Source: Macrostomum lignano
Lineage: Eukaryota
Assembly: GCA_002269645.1 (NCBI GenBank)
Contig: NIVC01001219.1
Location: 45,253 to 109,252, forward strand
Length of the DNA stretch: 64,000 nt
Direction: 5' to 3'
The notes beneath the pieces are model-generated. The model ran no database searches. It was not told the origin of the DNA and worked only from the letters and a program-made list of their open reading frames with translations. Numbering within the stretch: the stretch's first letter is position 1; each line of letters begins with the position of its first letter. This document shows positions 1,585 through 59,096 of the stretch, piece after piece. The position numbers and the translations under genes are program-made.

Positions 1585-2177
1585 TAAAACCGCTACTTCA
1601 GTGTCTAAGCATGGTAGAGATGGTTGCCATAACAACACATAGAACAAGTCAAGACTCCAGAACAACTAGTTGATCCATAAAACCCAATGGTACAAGCTTA
1701 CACAAGCTTACGAAATATATTTTCACTAATCCCTATCTCTCGTTCTCGTTAATGTCCCATCAACCCGAACCTCAGTCAGAACTGATGTAAACAGACGATA
1801 CCGTGCAAAACCCTGCTAGTTGGTACATTGCACATATACAGGATAAAGGCTTGCATATAAATCAAAAGCATTCCGTGTGCAGTTGGCAAGTAATGAAGGG
1901 GATGTTGCTGTATTTTTTTAGCAGCAGTAGTCGAATAGTGGCCCGGTCTGACATCCGCAGCCGGTCTATCACTGACTTTGATCGCACCGAAACATATAGT
2001 CTAACTGGATTGCTTCTTCTAGGGTGAAGCCAGACTTGTTGAGAGTTTCATCACTAAATTAGCGAGATTTACCGTACATGTAGTTAGTTATCTTTTGTTA
2101 TACTTTACTATTCATTCCAAGAGCTTCCCTGATGCTGAAAATAAATAACACTTATTCAAAAACAAATGTTCCTTAAC

Positions 2178-3169
2178 GGATCTGAGTGCAGGAACCGAAG
2201 GATCTGAGGGTAGATACTGAAGGATCTGAGAGTAGGTACTGAAGGATCTGAGGGTAGATACTGAAGGATCTGAGAGTAGGTACTGAAGGGTACTGAGGGT
2301 AGGTACTGAAGGATCTGAGGGTAGGTACTGAAGGATCTGAGGGTAGGTACTGAAGGATCTGAGGGTAGATACTGAAGGATCTGAGAGTAGGTACTGAAGG
2401 ATCTGAGGGTAGGTACTGAAGGATCTGAGAGTAGATACTGAAGGATCTGAGAGTAGATACTGAAGGATCTGAGGGTAGATACTGAAGGATCTGAGAGTAG
2501 GTACTGAAGGATCTGAGGGTAGGTACTGAAGGATCTGAGGGTAGGTACTGAAGGATCTGAGGGTAGATACTGAAGGATCTGAGGGTAGGTATTAAAGGAT
2601 CTGAGAGTAGGTACTGAAGGATCTGAGAGTAGATACTGAAGGATCTGAGAGTAGGTACTGAAGGATCTGAGAGTAGGTACTGAAGGATCTGAGGGTAGAT
2701 ACTGAAGGATCTGAGAGTAGGTACTGAAGGATCTGAGGGTAGATACTGAAGGATCTGAGAGTAGGTACTGAAGGATCTGAGAGTAGGTACTGAAGGATCT
2801 GAGAGTAGGTACTGAAGGATCTGAGAGTAGGTACTGAAGGATCTGAGAGTAGGTACTGAAGGATCTGAGAGTAGGTACTGAAGGATCTGAGGGTAGATAC
2901 TGAAGGATCTGAGAGTAGATACTGAAGGATCTGAGAGTAGGTACTGAAGGATCTGAGAGTAGGTACTGAAGGATCTGAGAGTAGGTACTGAAGGATCTGA
3001 GGGTAGATACTGAAGGATCTGAGAGTAGATACTGAAGGATCTGAGAGTAGGTACTGAAGGATCTGAGAGTAGGTACTGAAGGATCTGAGAGTAGGTACTG
3101 AAGGATCTGAGGGTAGATACTGAAGGATCTGAGGGTAGATACTGAAGGATCTGAGGTAGGTACTGAAGG
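2178..3169. repeat. Minisatellite, 22-bp unit GAAGGATCTGAG(A/G)GTAG(G/A)TACT
   Basis: 22-bp periodicity; it accounts for ORFs 2156-3190 and 2592-3212. Confidence 0.97.
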
Positions 3170-4000
3170 TTTGGTGACAGATTTCTGCATAGGATTGAGT
3201 ACCTACCTGCATTGACGGATTGATTACATTGAATGTAATTTCCGGTTTGGTGCCAAATTTTGGAATGTGACTCAGCAGTTTCAGACGAATTATCTCAATT
3301 AGTCACCCAATCATTGTCACCGAAACTGGGTCACGGAATCGTACTAATTTTCGAGACTCAAACCAGTAATTAAAGCTAAGCTACGACCTATGATATACCG
3401 GTTATTTCCAATTAACACACTGAGAGCCCCATCGTCAATTTTCTCTGATATGCTAGACACTGGCTTAAACGCTGAGATGACCAAAGCAAATTTTTTCTTT
3501 ATCAGCGCAGCACAGAAGGCAATAAAGAAAACGGCTTCTTATGTATTTTTCATGGGATTTCGACGCAAGCTGGTCGACCGTTGAAATTTATACCGAATAG
3601 GAGAAAAACTAGGGAAGGTGTTGTACTTTAACTACTGCCATCTTTGTTGCACCGATGTCGTTGCTTGTTGCCATGGACATCTTAGTTCTGTACTACGCTA
3701 AATAAAGCGCGCGCAACGCAACCTTTGCATTAATTAAAACTTGCTCTGCCAGCGCTCTGTAACTACAGAAGGGTTTGGTGATCCCGGATGTGACCGACGA
3801 TAAACCCTCGGCTGCTTCCAAACGCATCTTTCATCGGCCCTTTCTCCCATCTTGCCTCAACAACATAGTTATAGACGGATCTTTTCCTTAGTTTCAGCTT
3901 CGCCTTCCGTTCCTATTAAAGCTGACGAGAACTGGCTCAGTAAGTAAAATTTTATTACTAATTCAATGAGACCTTATTCCAGCCTCTTCGTATTTGTAGC

Positions 4001-11674: not shown

Positions 11675-11965
11675 GGAGCAGAGTAGCTCAGTTGTAAAGT
11701 GTCCGACGGTCGCACCAAATCATCCGGGTCCGATGCCAGATATCCTGGTTCCATATTCATTTGGGACTCGCGAAGGAATATTAACTTAAGGGTTGTGCTG
11801 CTCTCCTAAATTAGGGCCAACTCAAAAGTTGCAGAGCCGCCGTACACCTATGTGAACATGGGTACGAGTGCGTGCCGTATTGGCGCGCTTGTATGTGTTC
11901 AGGAGTCAGAGCAATGAGCAGGATTGAGACGAAGTCGCTGAAGGCATTGCGTCAGGATGGCCACG
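11675..11965 (+). mobile_element. Degenerate tRNA-derived SINE, family B
   Basis: Decayed tRNA-like head; body GTACGAGTGCGTGCC..ATTGGCGCGCTTGTATG matches copies at 31794 and 53800. Confidence 0.6.
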
Positions 11966-13794: not shown

Positions 13795-13965
13795 AACAAC
13801 CTGGCGCAACGCCTTCGACAACAACGTCCCACAACCAGCGCTGAGGTAGCTCTGTACGCAGGCACGCACTCATACACACGCTCACACACGTACAAGTACA
13901 CACTCTGTAGGGGAATCGAACCAGGATTTGTAGCACGAGAGTCAGACGCGTTTAACTTGAGATCA
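13795..13965 (-). mobile_element. SINE family B-related copy (tRNA-like head plus partial body)
   Basis: B box GGTTCGATTCCCC on the minus strand; CTGGCGCAACGCCTT..CAACCAGCGCT is shared with 53821-53860. Confidence 0.6.
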
Positions 13966-31793: not shown

Positions 31794-32144
31794 GAGGGGG
31801 CAGTTAGCCCAGCGGTCTAGCGCAGCTGCTCTGATGCGCCAGCGACCCAGGCTTGATTCCAAGTGCAGCCACATTAATTTGGGGCTGAATTGGAATCTCG
31901 GCTTGGCTCTGCTCGTGCAATTAACGGCCTTGAGAGCCAACCCCCCAAGGCGCAGTAAAGTGTACATGCCTAACAATTGATAAAGTTAGGGCCGCTGTAC
32001 ACTACTGTGTGAGTGTGTGCCTGCGTACGTATCCGCGCGCTTGTATGCCTGCTCAGGGAAGTCGGCGGAATGGGCAGCAATGCCTCTCGCCGGTTGTGTG
32101 CCAATGTCGCTTAAAGTGGCACACAACCCCCTGCCTCTAATAAA
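31794..32144 (+). mobile_element. Full-length tRNA-derived SINE family B with a 14-bp target-site duplication
   Basis: AAACGGCGCTGAAT at 31780-31793 and 32145-32158; tRNA-like head GGGGCAGTTAGCCCAGCGGTCTAGCGC..GCTTGATTCC; short A-rich end. Confidence 0.85.
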
Positions 32145-34805: not shown

Positions 34806-35632
34806 TAGATCTAGTTTTCGCCCTCCAGATCTAGTTTCCGCCCTCCAGATCTAGTTTTCGCCCTCCAGATCTAGTTTCCGGCCTCCAGATCTAGTTTCCG
34901 CCCTCCAGATCTAGTTTCCGCCCTCCAGATCTAGTTTCCGCCCTCCAAATCTAGTTTCCGCCCTCTAGATCCAGGTTCCGCCCTCTAGATCCAGTTTCAG
35001 CCCTCCAGATGTAGTTTCCGCCCTCCAGACCTAGTTTCCGCCCTCCAGATCTAGTTTCCGCCCTCCATATCTATTTTCCGCCCTCCAGATCTAGCTTCCG
35101 CCCTCTAGATTCAGTTTCCGCCTTCTAGATCCAGTTTCCGCCTTCTAGATCCAGTTTCCGCCTTCTAGATCCAGTTTCTGCCCTCCAGATCTAGTTTCCT
35201 CCCTCCAGATCTAGTTTCCGGCCTCCAGATCTAGTTTCCGCCCTTTAGATCTAGTTTCCGGCCTCCAGATCTAGTTTCTGCCCTCTAGATCCAGTTTCCG
35301 CCCTTTAGATCTAGTTTCCGCCCTTCTAGATCTAATTTCTGCCCTTCTAGATCTAGTTTCCTCCCTCCAGATCTAGTTTCCGCCCTCTAGATTCAGTTTC
35401 CGCCCTCCAGATCTAGTTTCCGCCCTTTAGATCCAGTTTCCGGCCTCCAGATCTAGTTTCCGCCCTCTAGATCTAGTTTCCGCCCTCTAGATCTAATTTC
35501 TGCCCTTCTAGATCTAGTTTCCTCCCTCCAGATCTAGTTTCCGCCCTCTAGATTCAGTTTCCGCCCTCCAGATCTAGTTTCCGCCCTCCAGATCCAGTGT
35601 CCGCCCTCCAGATCCAGTTTCCGCCCTCCAAA
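34806..35632. repeat. 20-bp intronic minisatellite AGATCTAGTTTCCGCCCTCC
   Basis: Direct. Confidence 0.96.
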
Positions 35633-35734
35633 TCTTGTTTCCATCCCGAATCCTAAATTCCTGGCCTTGGCCGAGCTCCTGGCCGCGTCCAGCCTCTTCA
35701 AGTCCCGCTCAGCAAAATGAAAACCAGCGCGTAC

Positions 35735-36682
35735 ATTTCCTGGCGAAGCGCCAAAGGCGCGCAGATTTCGACGCAGCCAGCCAAGCGCCACGCCGGCGTC
35801 GCCGAGCGCCATGTTGCCGCCGCCGTCGCGCCACGGCGACTCGTCGTTGAGATCGCGGTGGGTCAGGTGGCCCGCGGCGCCGAGCCGGTGCCGCACTCGA
35901 ACCAGAACTACGCCGTCACCATTGCTGCCGTCTCCAACAGCCAGACGGTCCGGCAGGTGAAGATGCCGCGGCGACGCCAATCCCAGCAGGCCAGCCAGGA
36001 CGACCACTGTCGGTAGAGCGTCTTCGACGGCTTCTTCCTCGTCCGCCTCGCCTACCAGCGGGTGAACTGCGGGCGTTGCCAGGTCCAAGTACAGGCAGTC
36101 GGCGTCACCGCGGACCCGGCCGGCGATGTCCACCTGCGAGCAGGCGATCGCCTCGGAGTCCCAACGGCCCAGCCAGGGATAGCGGAGGCCGCGCCTGTGC
36201 CACGGCAGCTGGACTTCGTCGGGCGTCAGACGCCAGGCCTGGGCGCAGCTCGGCTGGTCGCGGACCGGCCTGGCCGGCAGCAGTTGCCACTGGCCGACTG
36301 GCGACAGGGCGAACGGCACGCCGTCGAAGCGATAGACCCGGCGCCAACTGACAGCGTCGTTGCCAACCGCCACTAGGCTGACGTTGGTGGCCTCCAGCAC
36401 GCCGCAGTCGATCTCGCGTTGGGCACCGCTCGCCCGATCCCGATAGGCCGGCTGGTAGACGGGGCGGCGGGCGCGGTCGGCGCTTAGCGCGATCGGCAGG
36501 GCGACAGCGAGGGCGACGCAGAGCAGCAGGAAGAAGGCAACGGCGCCGCGGGTCAGAAGGCGGGCCCGACGCGAGTTGGCGTCAGCGGCGGCGTTGGCCT
36601 CCTCGAACGTGGCCAGCGGGGCCAGCTTCTCTTGGGGCTCCGGAGGCAGCGGCAGCGGCGGAGGTGGAGGCGGCGGCTGTGA
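35735..36682 (-). CDS. Neurotactin-like gene, exon 2 (poly-Pro, TM helix, start of the esterase domain)
   Basis: 948 nt in frame: GAVAFFLLLCVALAVALPIALS (TM), FDGVPFALSPVG, DADCLYLDLATP, RHRLGAAGHL, GNMALGD..ALGWLRRNLRAFGASPGN; donor AAT|GTACGC. Confidence 0.92.
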
Positions 36683-45048: not shown

Positions 45049-45921
45049 GATTCAGCAAAAAAAAATTCAAAAATTCAACCGCGAGCAACCCCGCGCAGCC
45101 ACAAAGGTGGCGGCCTAAATAGGCACGCGCACGCACAACGCACCCACCACCCCACCATACAGCCAGCACCCAAACAGCCCCCCTTGCACTAACAGCGGTT
45201 AGCCCTCGCGGGCTCGCGCAAACCGATGCAATACATAAGACTCAGTAGTGATACATTAGTCTCGGTAGTGATACATTAGACTCAATATTGATACATTAGG
45301 CTCAGTAGTGATACATTAGACTCGGTAGTGATACATTAGACTAAATATTGATACATTAGATTCAGTAGTGATACATTAGACTCAATAGCGATACACTCAA
45401 AGATTGGAACTGCTTGAATATACCTGACTTGGTGGGCCCTAACGACTGGATATAGATCAATAAACTACGAGTACAAGTGGTGAAATTACATACAAAGTAA
45501 TAAAGGATTCAGACAACAATTCCAAATAAAGAAATGTATTACTTCAGAGATGTTCAATCAGGCCTTTGCCATCTGCAGAACCGGATAGCAAAATGTCATA
45601 TAATATATATTGTTGAGATAAGAAACAGCGCGCATGCGAGGGTGAAAAAATGCTGCACAGAAAATGCAAACTTCAGCTTAAGCTTTCATAAGTAGTCTGG
45701 TACACAATGTGTTTTACGTACGGAATCTTAGCTTTTTATAGGCACTTCCAGCCAGCCAATGAGGTGCAAAACTGATATAAATGAGACCAGTCTTTGTGGC
45801 TAAATATTCTACTAATAGTACCTTTACTCAGAGAATCGTGTTTATTAGATGAAAATTCGAATAAGTTGGAAAAGCTGACAACACAGAATTTTGATTTTTC
45901 AAAGCTCTCAAGCTTGGCAAG

Positions 45922-46324
45922 CCCGCATAAAAGTGGGACGGTCACAATTTTTTGGTGACGGTAAAAAATGTGTCACTGCTTGTCACATCAAAATGTAACA
46001 CTGCTTGTCACATTTTTGAGTCACATTGATCGGTCACATGAGCGGCCGTTTCTTTTTGACGGTCACATTGGAGGGTCACAAGAGAGACCGTTTATTTGAC
46101 GGTCACATTGGAGGGTCACAAGAGAGACCGTTTATTTGACGGTCACATTGGAGGGTCACATGAGAGACCGTTTATTTGACGGTCACATTGGAGGGTCACA
46201 TGAGAGACCGTTTATTTGACGGTCACATCAGAGGGTCACAATGGAGGGTCAAATGTGATACCATTTTTTGCTGGTCACAAAACAGATCACAAATTCAAAA
46301 TGTGCCGTCACACTTTTATACGGG
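45922..46324. mobile_element. ~400-bp MITE with CCCG..CGGG termini and internal 40-bp tandem repeats
   Basis: CCCGCATAAAAGTGGGACGG versus the reverse complement CCCGTATAAAAGTGTGACGG; many GTCACA motifs; TSD not clean. Confidence 0.75.
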
Positions 46325-46745: not shown

Positions 46746-47040
46746 TCACGACCAGTCGTCCTCGTTCGGCACATCGGCCGGCCTTGGCTGGAAAGTTCCG
46801 CCGCCGACGCCCAGGCCGAAACTGTCGTCGATGATGTCGACGGTGCGACCGATGCCGCGTCGAATGTCGCGATACTCGCCGCGTCCGCGTCCGCGGCCGC
46901 CGTAGCCGTTGCCCGAGCAGCCTTCGCGTTCGGCGATTGTCTCAAGCCATTCGGGCACCGGCTGTTGGGCACTGCGGAGATTGCCGACTAGCTGGTGGGC
47001 TAACGGCCCGTCTGCGTTGGGATCGAAGAAGCTGATGGAT
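46746..47040 (-). CDS. vasa: vasa/DDX4-class helicase, exon 5 (last)
   Basis: CCCCAG acceptor phase 2; SISFFDP..QPVPEWLE; acidic Trp tail EDDWS*. Confidence 0.9.
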
Positions 47041-47155: not shown

Positions 47156-47640
47156 ATGCTGGTGGATTAGCGCAGCAGATGCTGGTGGATTAGCGCAGCA
47201 GATGCTGGTGGATTAGCGCAGCAGATGCTGGTGGATTAGCGCAACAGATGCTATGCTGGTGGATTAGCGCAACAGATACTATGCTGGTGGATTAGCGCAA
47301 CAGATGCTATGCTGGTGGATTAGCGCAACAGATACTATGCTGGTGGATTAGCGCAACAGATGCTATGCTGGTGGATTAGCGCAACAGATGCTATGCTGGT
47401 GGATTAGCGCAACAGATGCTATGCTGGTGGATTAGCGCAACAGATGCTATGCTGGTGGATTAGCGCAACAGATGCTATGCTGGTGGATTAGCGCAACAGA
47501 TGCTATGCTGGTGGATTAGCGCAACAGATGCTATGCTGGTGGATTAGCGCAACAGATGCTATGCTGGTGGATTAGCGCAACAGATACTATGCTGGTGGAT
47601 TAGCGCAACAGATGCTATGCTGGTGGATTAGCACAACAAA
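47156..47640. repeat. 23/28-bp intronic minisatellite ATGCTGGTGGATTAGCGCAACAGATGCT
   Basis: Direct. Confidence 0.95.
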
Positions 47641-47657: not shown

Positions 47658-47875
47658 CTGCCCAGATTGCCGCAGCGCCCAGTCCGGCCAATCCTGTGCA
47701 CATAGCTGGAGTCATCCTGCGGCAAGTCGTAATTAATCACCAGCGATATGCCTGAGATGTCGATGCCGCGGGACATCATATTAGTAGTCACCATCACCGG
47801 TGTGGTGCCGCTGCGGAACTCGGAGAAGGCCCGCTGACGCTCGGCCGGCGGCCGGTCGCCGTGATTATTGGTGGC
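47658..47875 (-). CDS. vasa: vasa exon 4 (motifs V-VI)
   Basis: Missing from the ORF track: ATNNHGDR..SRGIDI..VINYDLP..YVHRIGRTGRCGNLG; CTAG acceptor, AG|GTGAGG donor. Confidence 0.94.
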
Positions 47876-48254: not shown

Positions 48255-49292
48255 GTAAACAAGCAGACACACAGTAGACATTCGAGTGACAGACAAGCAG
48301 TGACACAGCGGACATGTCAGTGACAGACAAGCAGACACACAGTAGATACGCGAGTGACAGACAAGCAATGACGCAGTAGACATGCGAGTGACAGACAAGC
48401 AGTGACGCAGTAGACATGCGAGTGACAGACAAGCAGTGACGCAGTAGACATGCGAGTGACAGACAAGCAATGACGCAGTAGACATGCGAGTGACAGACAA
48501 GCAATGACGCAGTAGACATGCGAGTGACAGACAAGCAGTGACGCAGTAGACATGCGAGTGACAGACAAGCAGTGACGCAGTAGACATGCGAGTGACAGAC
48601 AAGCAGTGACGCATTAGACATGCGAGTGACAGACAAGCAGAGACACAGCAGACATTCGAGTGACAGACAAGCAGACACACAGTAGATACGCGAGTGACAG
48701 GCAAGCAGCGACGCAGTAGACATGCGAGTGACAGACAAGCAGTGACGCAGTAGACATGCGAGTGACAGACAAGCAATGACGCAGTAGACATGCGAGTGAC
48801 AGACAAGCAGAGACACAGCAGACATGCGAGTGACAGGCAAGCAGTGACACAGCGGACATGCGAGTGACAGACAAGCAGACACACAGTAGATACGCGAGTG
48901 ACAGACAAGCAGACACACAACAGACATGCGAGTGACAGACAAGCAGAGACACAGCAGACATGCGAGTGACAGGCAAGCAGTGACACAGCGGACATGCGAG
49001 TGACAGACAAGCAGAGACACAGCAGACATGCGAGTGACAGACAAGCAGAGACACAGCAGACATGCGAGTGACAGACAAGCGAGTGACAGACAAGCAGACA
49101 CACAACAGACATGCGAGTGACAGACAAGCAGAGACACAGCAGACATGCGAGTGACAGGCAAGCAGTGACACAGCGGACATGCGAGTGACAGACAAGCAGA
49201 GACACAGCAGACATGCGAGTGACAGACAAGCAATGACACAGCAGACATGCGAGTGACAGACAAGCAGAGACACAGCAGACATGCGAGTGACA
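48255..49292. repeat. 34-bp intronic minisatellite ACAGACAAGCAGTGACGCAGTAGACATGCGAGTG
   Basis: Direct; it explains the Cys-rich ORFs. Confidence 0.96.
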
Positions 49293-49317
49293 GGTGTCCC
49301 TCCGCTCAATGGCTCAC

Positions 49318-49887
49318 CTCAAAGCCCTTGTCGCACAGCAGCATGCCAATCAGGTTGGCCGTCTCCTTTCGTTCGACAAACACCAAAACTTTTCGCTCGC
49401 CAAATCCATTAGGCTCTAGGTCGCGAAATTCTGCTAGCAAAGCTAACAAAGTGGCGACCTTGTCGCCCTGAGACACTTCGCGTACCTCCTGGGTCACGTC
49501 GGGACTGGGCTTGCCAACCCGGCCGATGCTTAAGAACAAGTAGTCCTGGGCAAGGTAGCTGCCGGCTAGAGTCTGCACAGAGTGCGGGTAAGTAGCGGAG
49601 AACATGATCACCTGGCGCCGCTGATCGGCCGATTGCATAAAGGCCACAACGTCCTCTTGGAATCCCTGTTCCAGCATCCGGTCGGCTTCATCCAGTACAA
49701 TAAGCTTAGTTCTAGCCAGGCTAACTAAATTGCGATTAATGAAATCTTTCAGCCGGCCAACTGTAGCAACCAGGGTGTGCGCGCCGGACTGCAGGCATTT
49801 CACTAGGTGGGCGTGCTGGATGCTGCCGTGAATGCGCTGTACTTTTAGGCCGACCGGCTTGAAATAGACGGTGCACTGGTCGTACAC
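49318..49887 (-). CDS. vasa: vasa exon 3 (DEAD, SAT, motif IV)
   Basis: LDEADRML, FSATYP, LVFVERK; 570 nt, phase 0/0. Confidence 0.95.
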
Positions 49888-50102: not shown

Positions 50103-50573
50103 CAGGGGCGGATTTAGGGGCGGAAGGCCAAAATAGCTTGACAGAACATATTGCGTCCCCCCCAAAAAAAACCTAAGTTTGCGCCACCTAAACTTGTTTT
50201 TTTGCCCCCAAACACATTTTTTGCGGCCCTAAGCTTGATTTTTCGCTCCCCTACACGCATTTTTTGCGGCCCTAAGCTTGATTTTTCGCTCCCCTACACG
50301 CATTTTTGCGGCTCTAAGCTTGATTTTTCGCTCCCCTACACGCATTTTTGTGGCCCTAAGCTTGATTTTTCGCTCCCCTACACGCATTTTTGCGGCTCTA
50401 AGCTAGATTTTTCGCTCCCCTACACGCATTTTTGTGGCCCTAAGCTTGATTTTTCGCCCCTACACGCATCTTTGCGCCCCCTAGCTTTGGTTTGGCTGGC
50501 GCCCTTATACTCGTGCTGGCGCCCCAAACTTGGACCGCCTCCCCCCCCAAAATGAAACTCTAGATCGCCACTA
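50103..50573. mobile_element. Degenerate MITE (CAGGGGCGGATTTAG ... CTAGATCGCCACTA) with an internal 44-bp tandem repeat
   Basis: Imperfect TIR resembling hAT-type ends; no TSD found. Confidence 0.55.
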
Positions 50574-51130: not shown

Positions 51131-51451
51131 CTGAGTAGCCAGCTCCCTTGTAGGCACAACAATCAGCGAAGTTGGATAGCAGACTCCATTAAAGACAGTA
51201 TTATCAGTACTGAGCGTATCCAATAGCATTTTAATAATAGGCAGTAGATAGGCCAGAGTCTTGCCAGAGCCAGTCTGAGCGCAGGCCAGCAGATCGCGGC
51301 CAGACGCTACAATGGGTATAGCATAGGCCTGCACAGGGAATAGCCTATTGATTTTAAACGAATCGGTGACCACCTTCAGCACGGAGTCGGGCACGCCAAT
51401 TTCTTGCAGCGTTTTAATTGGAGGCGGCTTATTGCTACCGGTCAGTTCTAC
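51131..51451 (-). CDS. vasa: vasa exon 2 (Q motif, motifs I and Ia)
   Basis: VELTG..., FPVQAYAIP..GRDLLACAQTGSGKT, PTRELATQ; TTTTACAG acceptor, CAG|GTAAGA donor. Confidence 0.95.
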
Positions 51452-51951: not shown

Positions 51952-52782
51952 CTCAATCTGGTCAAAGATAGGCGCATTAACGCCAGTCTTAACCGACATC
52001 CGAGCGATGGCTTCCACTGTGAGTTCGGTAGGTATATAGGTCTCCCGCACGATGGGATCGCCGGCAGCAGCGTCATCGGCACCAACGCGAGTCGGACAGT
52101 CGCGCGCGATGTGACCGGGCTGGTTGCACTTGTAGCAAACTTCGGCTGATGCATTCGGACAATCTCTAGCTATGTGTCCGGTTTCTTTGCACCTGTAGCA
52201 GGCGCCGTCACCTCCGCCTCCACCTCTGCCGCCACCTCCTGAAGGCTGGTTGGGACAATCTCTAGCTATGTGTCCGGTTTCATTGCACCTATAGCAGGCG
52301 CCGTCACCTCCGCCTCCACCTCTGCCGCCACCTCCTGAAGGCTGGTTGGGACAATCTCTAGCTATGTGTCCGGTTTCATTGCACCTGTAGCAGGCGCCGT
52401 CACCTCCGCCTCCACCTCTGCCGCCACCTCCTGAAGGCTGGTTGGGACAATCTCTAGCTATGTGTCCGGTTTCATTGCACCTGAAGCAACCTTGTCTTCT
52501 TCCGGAACTATCTCCGCCTCCGCCACCGCCACCGCTGCCGCCAAAGCCTATAGAAGCGCCAAATCCAGTAGTAGAATTAAGCCCAGTTGGCGGGCTAGCA
52601 ACGGCTCCGTTAGACACAGTGGCGCCAGCACGGCCGCCATTGAAACCAGTGTTAATAGCGGCATTAGTCTCTATACCCAGCGCGACTGGCTGGGAAGCTG
52701 GGTGATGAGGCACAGGAGGCGACGGGATTAGCCCGTTGCTACTTGATGGGCTCGCAGATTTCCAAGCTCCACGTCCAGCCAT
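51952..52782 (-). CDS. vasa: vasa exon 1 (Gly-rich/RGG, five CCHC zinc knuckles)
   Basis: Five C-x2-C-x4-H-x4-C motifs; [16 protein letters not shown] matches the vasa GINF..YD.I region; GAG|GTTCGT donor; joined CDS 2235 nt (744 aa). Confidence 0.9.
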
Positions 52783-53109
52783 AATTTGTTTTTCAAGTTC
52801 TCAGAAAAAGCCGGGATAGCAATAAATAGCAATAAGTGCCTTGGTGGCTGGCCTACATTGGGCTGAGACTCGCACGACAAGCCCTCAGATTAATTTATCA
52901 AAAAATCAAAAAACATTTTTTAATCTCTAAAAGCTAGTCAGAAGCTTTAGTTGCTGAGAGCTAACCTACCCCTTTCCACGTATAATCGTTAATTTCAAGG
53001 ATAAATGAGTAAGAGCTTAAATACGATATAACAAAGACTATTTATTGTACAAATTTGTTAACTAGCAAATTTATCAGTCAAATAATTATGAGTCAAACAA
53101 CTATAAGAG

Positions 53110-53586
53110 CTACAGTCCCCGTCGAGGAGTTCTCTCAGACTGGTCGTCGGCGTACTCGTATGGCCTGGCGCGTTTAGTTTTCTGTGGAAACGGCCTAAAG
53201 AATGGCATCGGCTTGTGAAACACGGCCGTTAAATCATCCAGCGTGGGACCGAATCGTTCGCGATTGTCAGCGAGCCGAACTAGGCTGGGCTTCAATGGTG
53301 CAGCAGCTAAGGACTCCGACTCGGCAACGCTGCTAGACTCAGCCGGCATAGGCAGAGTGGAATCGTAGGGTTGTCGCTTACTGGGATGCCAGCATAGGAC
53401 GAATCCGCCGCAGTTGCTAACGGCAATGGCGTCTGATTGGTCCAGCTGACGCTTGGGGCTCTCGCCGCTGTTGTCAAGGGTGGCAGCGATATGGGCGGGC
53501 AGGCGGATCCCGCATTGCTGTTGCTGGTGCGCTCTACTAGTATACAGTTGAAAGCTGTTGAGAAGCGGCCTAATAATCCGCTGCAT
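53110..53586 (-). CDS. MRPL42: Mitochondrial ribosomal protein L42 (MRP-S32 family), intronless, 158 aa
   Basis: IAVSNCGGFVLCWHPSKRQPYDSTLPMP...GPTLDDLTAVFHKPMPFFRP resembles, from memory, MRPL42 (ALTSDGRTIVCYHPS..PYEHTKPIP..GP..EQLSKMF); Arg-rich N-terminus; ATG follows a strong acceptor at 53605; AATAAA at 53046-53041. Confidence 0.8.
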   Translation of the reverse strand: MQRIIRPLLNSFQLYTSRAHQQQQCGIRLPAHIAATLDNSGESPKRQLDQSDAIAVSNCGGFVLCWHPSKRQPYDSTLPMPAESSSVAESESLAAAPLKPSLVRLADNRERFGPTLDDLTAVFHKPMPFFRPFPQKTKRARPYEYADDQSERTPRRGL

Positions 53587-53799
53587 TGTCAGAGTCTGCG
53601 GCGGCTGCGGAAATAAGAGAGAGAGAGAGAGAGAGATTGCAAGCTTGGATAATGAGCCAACGTGTAAAACACATAGCCTACTAATGAGTAGTAAGAACAA
53701 AATGTGAAGCAAATATTCTATGTACACTGTAGCTAAATTTAACTATGAAAAAGTGAGTTCTACGGGTCTTAGCTCGTAAAATACGAAATCGATAATAAT

Positions 53800-54040
53800 A
53801 CTCCCAGGGCTGTCGGCACCCTGGTGCAACGCCTTTGGCGACATCGTCTTACAACCAGCGCTAATCAATTCTGCCCATTCCGCAGACTTCTGAGCACACA
53901 CAAGCGCACCAATACTGTATGCAAGCACGCACTCGTACACAACGCTCACACAGAGTGTACAGCGGCCCTTGTGACTGTCTAATCGTCAGGCATGTACACT
54001 CTCTGTGCCTTGAGGTTTGGCTTTCATAGCTGTGAATCTC
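53800..54040 (-). mobile_element. SINE family B copy (partial)
   Basis: AGTGTACATGCCT..GGGCCGCTGTACACT..GGAATGGGCAG is shared with 31930-32085. Confidence 0.75.
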
Positions 54041-54312
54041 ACCACACAATCCCTAAATAGATGAGGCAAGACAGGGGGCCCGTGGCGCTAGAGACGCTTT
54101 TAACGCTGAGCACTTTCTCATTTAGAAGCTCTTAATCAGTGAATTAACTTCTTACTTAGTGCTAGTCAGGGCTCAAGGTTTGTCTTCTGTCAGCTCTCTT
54201 CTCTCTAATAATCTATTCTATCCTCTTCTTCTCTCCCCCTGTTTAAATAGTTTTTATTAAAGCGTCACAATCGCAGTGCCATTAGTCATCCTTAATCCAA
54301 ATTCAGGATGCC

Positions 54313-55180
54313 AAATTAAAGGCCGAGATCCCAGCTGGCATCAGTCAAAGATGTCCAAATCCCAAAGTAAAAGTAGAGATCCCAGCTGGCATTAGTCAAA
54401 GAGTTCCAAATCCCAAAGTAAAAGTAGAGATCCCAGCTGGCATCAGTCAAAGATGTCCTAATCCCAAATTAAAAGCCGAGATCCCAGCTGGCATCAGTCA
54501 AAGATGTCCAAATCCCAAATTAAAAGCCGAGATCCCAGCTGGCATCAGTCAAAGAGTTCCAAATCCCAAAGTAAAAGCCGAGATCCCAGCTGGCATCAGT
54601 CAAAGAGTTCCAAATCCCAAAGTAAAAGTAGAGATCCCAGCTGGTATCAGTCAAAGATGTCCAAATCTTAAATTAAAAGCCGAGATCCCAGCTGGTATCA
54701 GTCAAAGATGTCCAAATCTTAAATTAAAAGCCGAGATCCCAGCTGGCATCAGTCAAAGAGTTCCAAATCCCAAAGTAAAAGCCGAGATCCCAGCTGGCAT
54801 CAGTCAAAGAGTTCCAAATCCCAAAGTAAAAGTAGAGATCCCAGCTGGCATCAGTCAAAGATGTCCAAATCCCAAATTAAAAGCCGAGATCCCAGCTGGT
54901 ATCAGTCAAAGATGTCCAAATCTTAAATTAAAAGCCGAGATCCCAGCTGGCATCAGTCAAAGATGTCCAAATCCCAAATTAAAAGCCGAGATCCCAGCTG
55001 GCATCAGTCAAAGATGTCCAAATCCCAAATTAAAAGCCGAGATCCCAGCTGGCATCAGTCAAAGATGTCCAAATCCCAAATTAAAAGCCGAGATCCCAGC
55101 TGGCATCAGTCAAAGATGTCCAAATCCCAAATTAAAAGCCGAGATCCCAGCTGGCATCAGACAAAGATTTCCAAATCAAA
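54313..55180. repeat. 51-bp minisatellite GAGATCCCAGCTGGCATCAGTCAAAGATGTCCAAATCCCAAATTAAAAGCC
   Basis: Direct; 17-aa periodicity. Confidence 0.96.
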
Positions 55181-56325
55181 TTTAAAATACCAGCAACTCT
55201 GCCCTACTCTTTACATTACTGGAACTTTTTGACTCACAGAAGTTGCAGAAGTCTGCAGACTCCATGTTTCCAGATTTACTCAAACCTAACAATTGATAGA
55301 AGTATTAAAGTTCAGAGAATTAATAAAATAATTGATACTTATAATGAAATAAAAAATACACAACTTAACTAGTATTTAGCTTGGAAAAAAAACAGGGTGC
55401 TTGACACAAGCGTATAAATATATACCAATGTATAGTCCTAGGATTTGAATTATAATTAATATTTTCTGTCTATAATTGTAATAATAGGGGTAAAACAAAG
55501 GAACACGGCTTACGAGCTACTCTATCTGTTTGATACAGTCTCAAATTATCTTTTTGTTCTCAAGTAAATATAAAATAACCATTATATTCATAGCAAAATA
55601 ATCAAGAGAATTGAATGCGTTACAACATTTCTATCCAGTTTATTTATTAACTTATAAACTTTACCAAACTAAAATAAAACGGAAAGCAATTCAAAAGCAA
55701 CTTAGAATAGTAGTCAGTAGTGTTAGCAGTAGTAGGCACCCAAATAAGACAAGAAATCATGCAATTTTATTATATTATAAACGTAATAAAAATTGAAAAT
55801 GGCGCAATATAGTTCAAAAAAACTATCTGGCTTACCTTGAATGAGGCATGGAATTTAACTGTGAGCTGTCTCGCTAATACCATCAGAATAATTTTATATA
55901 CTATACAGTTTAATAATGTTTGCATTATCTAAATTTATCTTAAAAATTATTATGCAAGAAAACAAAGCGCAGGCAATAATGGCTAAGTATAAAAACTATT
56001 TATTGGTAAATTTGTGAAAAAAACTACGGTTTAAAAAATCTATTGACGAATGTTTGACTGGCAGTTTTTGTAATCGATTTGTAAAGATAGTGAACTACAA
56101 AAATAATCAGTAGAATTATATAAAGTTACAAAAAATGGATTTGTCCGTGCAGAAAAACCCTAACGACAAGCACGAATATGTACAGTACACGAATGTAATA
56201 GTGCTGAGATTCCCGTTGGCTTAGATCAGTGATTGGCAAACATGAAGGCCTACAACGACACTCGGAGTCTTTCGAGACTTCACAATAGCAATCCATTCTG
56301 CTCAAGGTTTGTGTTGTCTCTTCTC

Positions 56326-56372
<47 letters not shown>

Positions 56373-56702
56373 CTCTTTTTTTCACTCTCACTTTTTCATC
56401 TCTCATCCATCCATTCCCTCTCTTCTATACCTGTTTTCCTCTCTCAGTTGGCCTGCAGCCGTGAGCTAGATTCTTATCCAGCCCTCGAGGTACAAAAGTT
56501 TGCCAACACCTGACTTAGACGAGCCAGGTGCCATAGTCTTGTTATGACTTATGAAGACTAGTGCTTACAATAATCTACTTCTATTATTCAGACTGACTGG
56601 GTTCTCAAATGTTAAACCTGCTCACACTAAGACAACGGGATTAGAATCTGCTAATCTGCACACACGCAACAGTATATAATATTAATACACAGTAAATATA
56701 GA

Positions 56703-57260
56703 TCAAAAACCGAACATTTCCTGGCTAGCGTAAGTCATATACAAGAAGCCATCTTCGTCTCTGTCGCAGTCGTACACCTGGCCTAGGGTGGCTGACATAG
56801 CAACTAGGCATTTATTATTCACTAACAGGTAGAACGCCTGATTTTGATCGATACGAATGCGCTGCCTAATTATAGCAGCAAATTGGCCAACGGTGAGCTC
56901 TTCTGGCACGAGAAACTTAGCCTTGTCCAAGCTAGCTAGCGAGCGCTCGCGCGGATACCGTTCAACAATAACTGGCACCTTGGCTGGGAAGCGGCATTTA
57001 ATATGCGCCGATTCAGCCTGGCGCTGGCCTAGGGTCTTCTTAGCCTTGAACCGGGCAGGCTGCTGGCCCTGCTGGCTACTGGGGCTGGAGGACTGCGCCA
57101 GGGCGACTCGTAGCGAACTGGCATGAAGAGTAGAGAACAGACCAGATTTATTCAGCGCAATCTTATGAATTACTACTTTGGATTGAAATTGATTCTTATG
57201 CAGAGAAAAACTCAATTTCAAACTGGATTTCGTCAGTAGTCTCTGCAGTGCATGCATCAT
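56703..57260 (-). CDS. MAP1LC3: ATG8-family protein, LC3 (LC3C-like) subfamily; 5' end uncertain
   Basis: KVPVIVERYPRE..LDKAKFLVPEELT..FYLLVNNK..MTYASQEMFG+F*; a possible phase-2 acceptor at 57118 means the true start may lie in an unfound upstream exon. Confidence 0.9.
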   Translation of the reverse strand: MMHALQRLLTKSSLKLSFSLHKNQFQSKVVIHKIALNKSGLFSTLHASSLRVALAQSSSPSSQQGQQPARFKAKKTLGQRQAESAHIKCRFPAKVPVIVERYPRERSLASLDKAKFLVPEELTVGQFAAIIRQRIRIDQNQAFYLLVNNKCLVAMSATLGQVYDCDRDEDGFLYMTYASQEMFGF

Positions 57261-59096
57261 TTTTAGTTTGATTGTGTGATTACATGTAGCTTTTTTTAAT
57301 TCATAAGAAGTTTATCAAATTCTAAAAAATAGCGTCTATGTCCCTAAATCCATTATACTAAACGTGAGTAGTATAAACTACTGAGCTCAAAACTTAAGCA
57401 ACCCATGTCGGCTTTTTCTATTGCCACAATACAAAGTGGCCTATCTAGGGGATAAATGAGATCTATAGTTGAGACTCAGCTATCTGCTGCATGCAGACAC
57501 AGACAGCTTGAGATTTTGAATTTTGAAACCTAAATTCATTTAGTTTTAAATACCTCAGTTATTACAATCCTAATTGTCAGCATATTAAGTTTGCCAATAA
57601 CGTGAAAGAAGTTAGTATTCTGTTAAAAAATTCATGACTAGCATTTTAACATTCCAGTGAGAATGAAACTATTCAAGTATAAAAACTACCATACTGTGTA
57701 CAAATATATTAGTTTGAGTAGACTCCAGGTACCTAAATCCTTTTGCATTGCAGCTTTGTATCAGCAACTATGACAAGTCGAAAAGGAAGCTTATTATAGT
57801 TTTTTCATTGCAAGACTTTCTTCTGCAAAGCTGTGCAAAGCTCAAAATCTTTGTTATTGAAGGCATGCAAATTCGGAAATCCGATAGATTTGACACCAAT
57901 ACAGATCTGTGTTTGCCAGAGCCTAGTAAGGCCAATACTGAGCTCTTTTTCCTGGAACCCAGACAATTAATAATTGATCAAGCATTTTCTGGCATAGCTA
58001 TGACACATGACAAAGTGGCTATATCTGGTGCAGCATTATGCCTAGTAATGCCAATAAAAGACCATGGTTAACAGTTAATACATTGCCAAAAGTAGATCTT
58101 TTTGGAGATGTGAAATGTGTTCCTGAGAGTCAAACTTATTGAATTAGGCTAAATGAAAACTTCTACATAATGGAAATTGAATATTATTAAACAACATGAA
58201 AAGCCTCTTTTACTGACCAAGTCTTGCATTGCCAAGAGAAAACTGTTAGAGAGAAGGTTGAATTGTACAAGCCACTATCACTGTCAAATGTTCTATTTCA
58301 AGAGTCCTTTCTAATGATTCAGCTATATAGCTCTAGATACAAGGCAGCTTATATGCTTCCTTAAGTACCAAAGGATACCAAACAAAATGTACTCAAATGT
58401 ACTCAAATGTACTCAAACATATGTGGCAAAGGCAAGATACAAAGAGGTATTACATGTATTACAAGCTGTTAGCAAACAATGAATGTGATGACAATGATTC
58501 CATTCTAATGAACAGCCTTTTGCCTACTTCTTGGTTGATTAAGTGTTGACTCTACAAAACTTTTGAATACTAAGCTGCCTATTCATAGTCTAAAGGAAGG
58601 TAAAAGTCGGCATATCATTTTAGTAAATGGTATAGAATTTCATTAGAATTGTACTAAGAATACTGTGGTAGTGAGGCTACTACTACATTATTAAACATAA
58701 TTAATAAACTTATAACTAATAACATAACTAATAAACTTAAACACAAAACATAAAATTATTAAACATTGAATAAACTAGGACCTATCTTTGATTTATCTAT
58801 CAAAAAGTTGCTTTGTCCTTTAGTAGCTAGGTTTTTTGTTTGTTATTACTAAGATTCAAAATCATATTCAAAGTCTAATTTTAAGATGTAATTTAGAAAG
58901 TCAAAATATTATACTCCTATTATATAAAAAAACCTAACTAAGATAAAAAATTGCATTTAAAATCTAATTTGAAAATGCAATCTTGAAAATCAGGATGTTA
59001 TAATATTTTTATCACAAAAAATAAACTTAGCCTAGTAGGCCTAATTAGTATATAAAAATATACTAGACAAAACCATTGCACACTATTGCATTCTAT

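Follow-up and report, generated by a model that had tools for sequence, protein, structure and literature searches.

The macvasa (DDX4) locus of the flatworm Macrostomum lignano lies on contig NIVC01001219.1 of assembly Mlig_3_7 (GCA_002269645.1). Our analysis of a 64,000-nucleotide (nt) stretch containing it (contig positions 45,253 to 109,252, hereafter the window) indicates that the gene for the mitoribosomal protein MRPL42 (mL42) and vasa, located immediately downstream, probably form a two-gene spliced leader (SL) operon of the kind that is ordinary for this species. Window coordinates were tied to the contig through 11 sampled segments, together ~5.6 kb between positions 57560 and 51112, all of which are 100% identical and ungapped. 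Three genes follow one another on the minus strand in the order LC3-type ATG8, MRPL42 and vasa/DDX4, and no opposite-strand or other gene is called between MRPL42 and vasa. The initial annotation, made from the letters alone, had proposed that MRPL42 and vasa, possibly preceded by LC3, are co-transcribed and resolved by SL trans-splicing; its coordinates for the acceptors, the AATAAA, the ATGs, the LC3 open reading frame (ORF) and the minus strand were all correct when re-derived by script.

M. lignano uses a single 35-nt spliced leader, CGGTCTCTTACTGCGAAGACTCAATTTATTGCATG, which ends in AUG; ~30% of the genes undergo SL trans-splicing and 15% of all genes are assigned to operons, while among neoblast genes the corresponding values are 85% and 39% (PMC5730564, PMC8629364). 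With one leader and many operons, the species thus bears out the general premise that a flatworm resolves tightly spaced, co-oriented genes by SL trans-splicing. Two-gene units are the commonest operons (75%), the gaps between trans-spliced neighbours show a bimodal distribution with a peak at ~100 bp, and the published operon rule combines a repeat-adjusted gap of <1 kb with SL splicing of the downstream gene (PMC5730564, PMC8629364). The MRPL42–vasa pair falls within this rule, since only 310 nt separate the MRPL42 stop from the vasa acceptor and the downstream gene is TRANSSPLICED-flagged. Indeed, in the available entries of Supplementary Table 2 of Grudniewska et al. 2018, vasa (Mlig019643.g4 and Mlig022987.g4; human DDX4) carries TRANSSPLICED and is placed in the stringent neoblast class under UniRef50_A9J0E5, a M. 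lignano DEAD box helicase.

The intercistronic region (52800..53109, minus strand, 310 nt) contains two polyadenylation signals, AATAAA at 53046-53041 and ATTAAA at 52924-52919, followed by a pyrimidine tract and the candidate vasa acceptor, AG 52801-52800, in the context ctttttctGAG, 17 nt ahead of the vasa ATG at 52782. The AATAAA lies ~240 nt and the ATTAAA ~100 nt from this acceptor. The 333 nt between the stop of MRPL42 and the vasa start codon hold 20 AGs, and an AG within 20 nt of the ATG is not unusual; yet AG 52801-52800 is preceded by 39 nt free of AG, and its pyrimidine tract is the best of all 20 (0.75). The predicted trans-splice acceptor of MRPL42 (53605..53635, minus strand) consists of a (CT)n-TTATTTCCGCAG tract ending in AG 53606-53605, with the ATG at 53586 following 18 nt after the AG (leader 53604-53587). 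A second CAG is present nearby at 53598-53596; in the other two genome copies described below it reads as a consensus CTGCAG, which, lying 9 nt further downstream, would be an equally good acceptor. From the computed frames, the AUG supplied by the leader would be in frame with MRPL42, adding MPPQTLT to the 158-aa protein; for vasa it would be out of frame and open an upstream ORF of 24 codons that runs over the vasa ATG. As an observation apart, positions 52838-52814 of the spacer (minus strand) read CACTTATTGCTATTTATTGCTATCC, and the 9-mer ATTTATTGC within it (52827-52819) is shared with the leader's 3' part; it occurs in each of the three genome copies, and SL 9-mers occur 18 times in 128,000 window positions, with ~0.05 expected in the spacer.

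The public annotation is consistent with both acceptors. In Mlig_3_7, transcriptional units were assembled from short reads with StringTie/TACO, each cluster of near-identical assembled transcripts being given a prefix, and the units were then cut into genes by TBONE at SL-read peaks and poly(A) sites. All three deposited coding regions on NIVC01001219.1 are 5'-partial. That of MRPL42 (P0055, PPQTLTMQRII..) starts at 53604, the base right after the AG, and that of vasa starts at 52797, within 2 nt after AG 52801-52800; the deposited vasa proteins P0059 and P0060 begin with LEKQIM, corresponding to the earliest complete codon in a message whose first base is 52799. Such 5'-partial regions at the acceptors, both of which the initial annotation had singled out, are expected if TBONE cut the transcripts at SL-read peaks. 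Furthermore, MRPL42 and vasa have a common unit prefix in each of the two copies that yielded a name for both genes, namely Mlig019643 (g2 and g4) and Mlig009745 (g2 and g3); for the window's own contig, the third copy, the vasa name Mlig022987 g3 was recovered and no MRPL42 name. One prefix can fall to two unrelated genes only where a single assembled transcript spans them. The proposed operon is thus strengthened by the TRANSSPLICED flag, the shared prefix and the spacing rule, and co-transcription of MRPL42 and vasa, which we infer from the short-read assembly, the annotation names and the spacing, is likely.

Two more copies of the locus are present in Mlig_3_7, on NIVC01001463.1 and NIVC01001306.1, and the compared segments are 93-100% identical to the window. 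The order ATG8, MRP-S32, CCHC/DEAD helicase is kept in both, and the order and spacing of MRPL42 and vasa are alike in all three copies, with an intercistronic length of 308-310 nt. The presence of three copies fits the partial genome duplication known for the sequenced M. lignano line (PMC5730564, PMC8629364).

Under the operon reading, a single precursor RNA would run through MRPL42 into vasa. The same 35-nt leader would be trans-spliced to CAG 53606-53605, giving an MRPL42 message from 53604, and to AG 52801-52800, capping a vasa message from 52799. The MRPL42 message would be cleaved and polyadenylated after the AATAAA at 53046-53041 or possibly after the ATTAAA at 52924-52919, the latter option leaving a gap of ~100 nt to the vasa acceptor. 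Vasa would then lack a promoter of its own, and the promoter of the unit would be situated upstream of 53606, within the repeat-rich spacer or else ahead of LC3. Compared with the other SL operons of M. lignano (PMC5730564, PMC8629364), such a unit does not differ in kind: it would use the same leader, lies on one strand, has an SL-spliced downstream gene, a gap of <1 kb and the commonest, two-gene size, and includes a conserved neoblast gene.

Several observations weigh against this reading. The vasa acceptor is GAG instead of the usual M. lignano SL acceptor consensus YTNCAG (PMC5730564, PMC8629364). The shared prefix means that a short-read assembler joined both genes, and read-through could do likewise. 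Among the entries of Supplementary Table 2 that were listed, MRPL42 and LC3 do not occur and a TRANSSPLICED flag on MRPL42 is not seen; a search of the supplements of Wudarski et al. 2017 (PMC5730564) for flags on these two genes or for an operon list likewise gave no matches. Exact look-ups of the window MRPL42 and LC3 proteins returned no match, and the MRPL42 and vasa sequence clusters have GenBank genome-derived members only. Finally, vasa is neoblast-enriched according to the same listed entries, whereas broad expression is expected of a mitoribosomal gene; this hints at extra control of vasa, through an internal promoter or differential RNA stability.

This difference in expected expression also lends itself to another explanation, namely that vasa is SL-spliced but transcribed mainly from its own promoter in the 3' part of MRPL42 or in the 310-nt spacer. 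Vasa would in that case stand as a gene by itself, with a short outron, or as the downstream member of a 'hybrid' operon, and the shared unit would reflect read-through or a merge during assembly. In addition to the assignment of vasa to the stringent neoblast-enriched class, which contrasts with the expectation for a housekeeping mitoribosomal gene, it can be argued that the transcriptional units derive from short-read assembly and that trans-splicing is no proof of an operon, as only ~40% of SL-spliced M. lignano genes are assigned to operons (PMC5730564, PMC8629364). However, the 100-240 nt between the MRPL42 poly(A) signals and the vasa acceptor lie within the operon mode of the published distances, and the prefix is shared wherever both names were recovered. 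We therefore regard a predominant vasa promoter of this kind as unlikely, though a serious contender.

Equally to be reckoned with as a minor possibility is a three-gene operon in which LC3, MRPL42 and vasa are transcribed from one promoter upstream of LC3. Strand and order are the same in all three copies, with no gene called between LC3 and MRPL42 or in the 4.3-6.7 kb (depending on the copy) upstream of LC3; MRPL42 is g2 and vasa g3 or g4 of their units, leaving a g1 that could be LC3. Moreover, the authors of the operon survey state that repeats inflate distances inside M. lignano operons (PMC5730564, PMC8629364), and the LC3–MRPL42 spacer (53607..56702, minus strand, 3.1 kb) is rich in repeats: a 51-bp tandem array at 54311-55177 (867 bp), a dispersed repeat at 53817-54037 (220 bp) and a (GA)n tract at 56328-56369. 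Yet, even after the detected repeats are subtracted, the distance from the first LC3 poly(A) signal (AATAAA 56004-55999) to MRPL42 is ~1.3 kb, slightly over the 1-kb rule, a figure that takes account of repeats detected within the window and not of a species repeat library, so that the true value may be lower. In addition, the spacer varies among the copies (2.9, 3.1 and 4.5 kb), and the annotated 5' end of LC3 is not at an AG. The dispersed repeat has copies of 72-83% identity at ~31920-32110, 11833-11927 and 13797-13842; it lies ~200 nt upstream of the MRPL42 acceptor, inside the region in which one would look for an operon promoter.

The 5' end of LC3 is itself problematic. The deposited 5'-partial coding region (56703..57119, minus strand) encodes 138 aa, from SSLRV to ..QEMFGF, stop included, and the ORF extends upstream in frame for another 47 codons to an ATG at 57260 (57120..57260), giving a full ORF of 57260-56703. 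It is doubtful that this extension is coding: it is the most diverged segment between the copies, with differences at 8 of 141 nt against 2 of 417 in the ATG8 domain (compared regions of the 5' end: window 57260-57087, minus strand; copy L001, 6535-6700; copy L003, 4167-4330). In all three copies the deposited region starts with AGT (57119), without a start codon and with no AG before the limit. The genomic CATG that precedes this limit in the window (57125-57122) and in L001 matches the 4-nt 3' terminus of the spliced leader; L003 has TCTG. In L003, the deposited MRPL42 region is cut directly after its own ATG (it starts QRIIRP), and both this limit and that of LC3 may be false SL peaks arising from partial trimming of the leader. 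Two sites would set the leader AUG in frame with LC3: CTGCAG at 57248-57243, a consensus-type acceptor within the extension (junction 57243/57242 before A, 180 aa), and GCGCAG with its junction at 57093/57092 before T (130 aa, with an LC3C-like N-terminus). The strong-looking ccAG before TTCG (57118/57117) would yield an ORF of 14 codons only.

A further proposal in the initial annotation was that the unit links three germ-plasm-relevant functions. Given the share of genes assigned to operons in this species (15% overall and 39% among neoblast genes), the pairing of MRPL42 and vasa needs no special explanation, and the proposal found no support. A functional linkage could take the form of an mL42–vasa order, perhaps including LC3, that is conserved across macrostomids or flatworms and couples vasa dosage to the supply of mitoribosomes or autophagy in stem and germ cells, and/or of a vasa-specific translational brake exerted by the upstream ORF that the leader AUG opens; we consider this very improbable. 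No DEAD-box neighbour was found within 10 kb at the two non-flatworm mL42 loci that represent the closest relatives placeable on contigs, one in assembly GCA_001039355.2, which we take to be a brachiopod, and one on an environmental contig. A literature search on the MRPL42–vasa pair returned no paper singling it out. Least probable of all, to the point of being scarcely tenable, is that neither AG is an SL acceptor and that they are chance AGs or cis-acceptors for unannotated upstream 5' untranslated region (UTR) exons: while the 20 AGs of the spacer and the GAG at the vasa site leave some room for this, the available part of the published table flags vasa with TRANSSPLICED, the deposited regions start at both AGs although cis-splicing to an upstream exon would have made the models longer, and a script scan detected no GTRAG donor in the MRPL42–vasa spacer, hence no local donor that would make the vasa AG a cis-acceptor.

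The identities of the three genes were established by comparison with known families. The mature MRPL42 message would have a body of 53110..53604 (minus strand), comprising the 18-nt leader and a 158-aa ORF from ATG 53586 to the stop at 53110; this ORF shares 99% identity with M. lignano BOX15_Mlig019643g2 in GenBank. It matches Pfam PF10210 (MRP-S32/mL42) with 27.9 bits (E = 3e-6), slightly below the cut-off of 29.2; all six PDB matches are mL42 (best E = 4e-4), with a common core C(W/Y)HPS..PY..T.P.P, and all nine short full-library HMMER matches that were scanned are PF10210 members over the cut-off. Judged by these sequence comparisons, the predicted protein is a member of the mL42/MRPL42 family. 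Giant 'MRPL42-like' proteins returned by the full-library search were rejected as spurious, being translated perfect tandem repeats with 26% identity that were matched 36 times. The LC3 protein has a Pfam ATG8 match of 129 bits and is closer to LC3C (E = 8e-42) and LC3B (2e-33) in PDB than to the best GABARAP-family protein, GABARAPL2 (~1e-26); its C-terminus, ..QEMFG-F, has the Gly required for lipidation. Its sequence thus assigns the predicted protein to the LC3 subfamily of ATG8, and the deposited form (P0057) is identical on three contigs.

Vasa was modelled with five exons on the minus strand. Exon 1 (51952..52799) contains the 17-nt leader (52799-52783), the start codon and five CCHC zinc knuckles; exon 2 (51131..51451) the Q motif and Walker A of the DEAD domain; exon 3 (49318..49887) the DEAD box and SAT; exon 4 (47658..47875) the helicase C-terminal motifs; and exon 5 (46746..47040) the C-terminus, ..NEDDWS, with the stop, in agreement with the deposited end (16052 in L002, equivalent to window 46746). 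The coding model (52782-51952, 51451-51131, 49887-49318, 47875-47658 and 47040-46746) predicts a protein of 744 aa with five CCHC zinc knuckles, DEAD and Helicase_C domains recognized by Pfam. Its closest non-self relatives are DDX4/vasa proteins from many animals and phyla, at 40-44% identity, and on these grounds the predicted product is a Vasa/DDX4 DEAD-box helicase. A homology search started from exon 1 was discarded: with the word index saturated by the repeats, it retrieved unrelated CCHC proteins only. The CCHC knuckles are encoded by a 96-nt repeat (52157-52488), present in 3.5 genomic copies that are 98% identical. The deposited vasa proteins, of 686, 685 and 717 aa, have one or two 96-nt units fewer than the genomic model; these units were probably lost through collapse during short-read transcript assembly.

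Downstream of the vasa stop, by 1.7 kb, we detected an unannotated ORF of 155 aa with a SAP domain (45048-44040, minus strand; Pfam SAP, 31.7 bits), followed by a Cys/His-rich ORF. The vasa message has a published length of 3943 nt, which implies a 3' UTR of ~1.9 kb that would extend to the SAP-domain ORF; the latter may derive from a transposon or be another same-strand gene missing from the annotation. Tandem arrays at 46020-46241, 47156-47638, 48259-49293, 50178-50487 and 54311-55177, with periods of 40, 28, 34/68/102, 42 and 51 bp, fill the vasa 3' UTR, the vasa introns and the LC3–MRPL42 spacer, and their copy numbers vary among the three genome copies. Every copy of the 40-bp unit in the vasa 3' UTR array contains AATAAA. 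Two further minus-strand ORFs in the window bear no relation to the proposed operon: one, at 35534-36400, is a carboxylesterase-like fragment (Pfam COesterase, 61 bits), and the other, at 2156-3190, is of low complexity and matches FF and MBD weakly. A search of the window allowing up to three mismatches found no SL RNA gene, and a scan of the window gave no Rfam family matches and no tRNAs.

In its proposed mode of expression, the MRPL42–vasa unit resembles the SL2-type operons of Caenorhabditis elegans, in which the precursor is resolved by upstream 3' end formation coupled to downstream trans-splicing and gaps measure ~100-300 nt. Unlike M. lignano, where one leader ending in AUG serves all positions, C. 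elegans has a dedicated SL2 for downstream genes. In C. elegans operons, germline-expressed genes and mitochondrial or housekeeping genes are overrepresented. Similar to M. lignano, tunicates (Ciona, Oikopleura) and chaetognaths use one leader class for operon and non-operon genes; these single-leader operons belong to independent lineages and often have much shorter intercistronic regions. In another phylum, too, operonic and trans-spliced genes predominate among germline markers.

Since the central reading is supported by the public annotation, the MRPL42–vasa operon is essentially already catalogued there. The locus also exposes flaws in the deposited models, namely three 5'-partial coding regions, collapsed CCHC repeats in vasa and an LC3 without a start codon. 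For vasa reporter or driver lines, the promoter is not to be expected within the 310-nt spacer that precedes vasa and would likely lie beyond MRPL42, in or beyond the repeat-rich 3-kb spacer; conversely, a knock-in or deletion at MRPL42 may disturb vasa as well. Overall, the locus illustrates the known trend that conserved stem-cell and germline genes of this worm are usually SL-spliced and often operonic.

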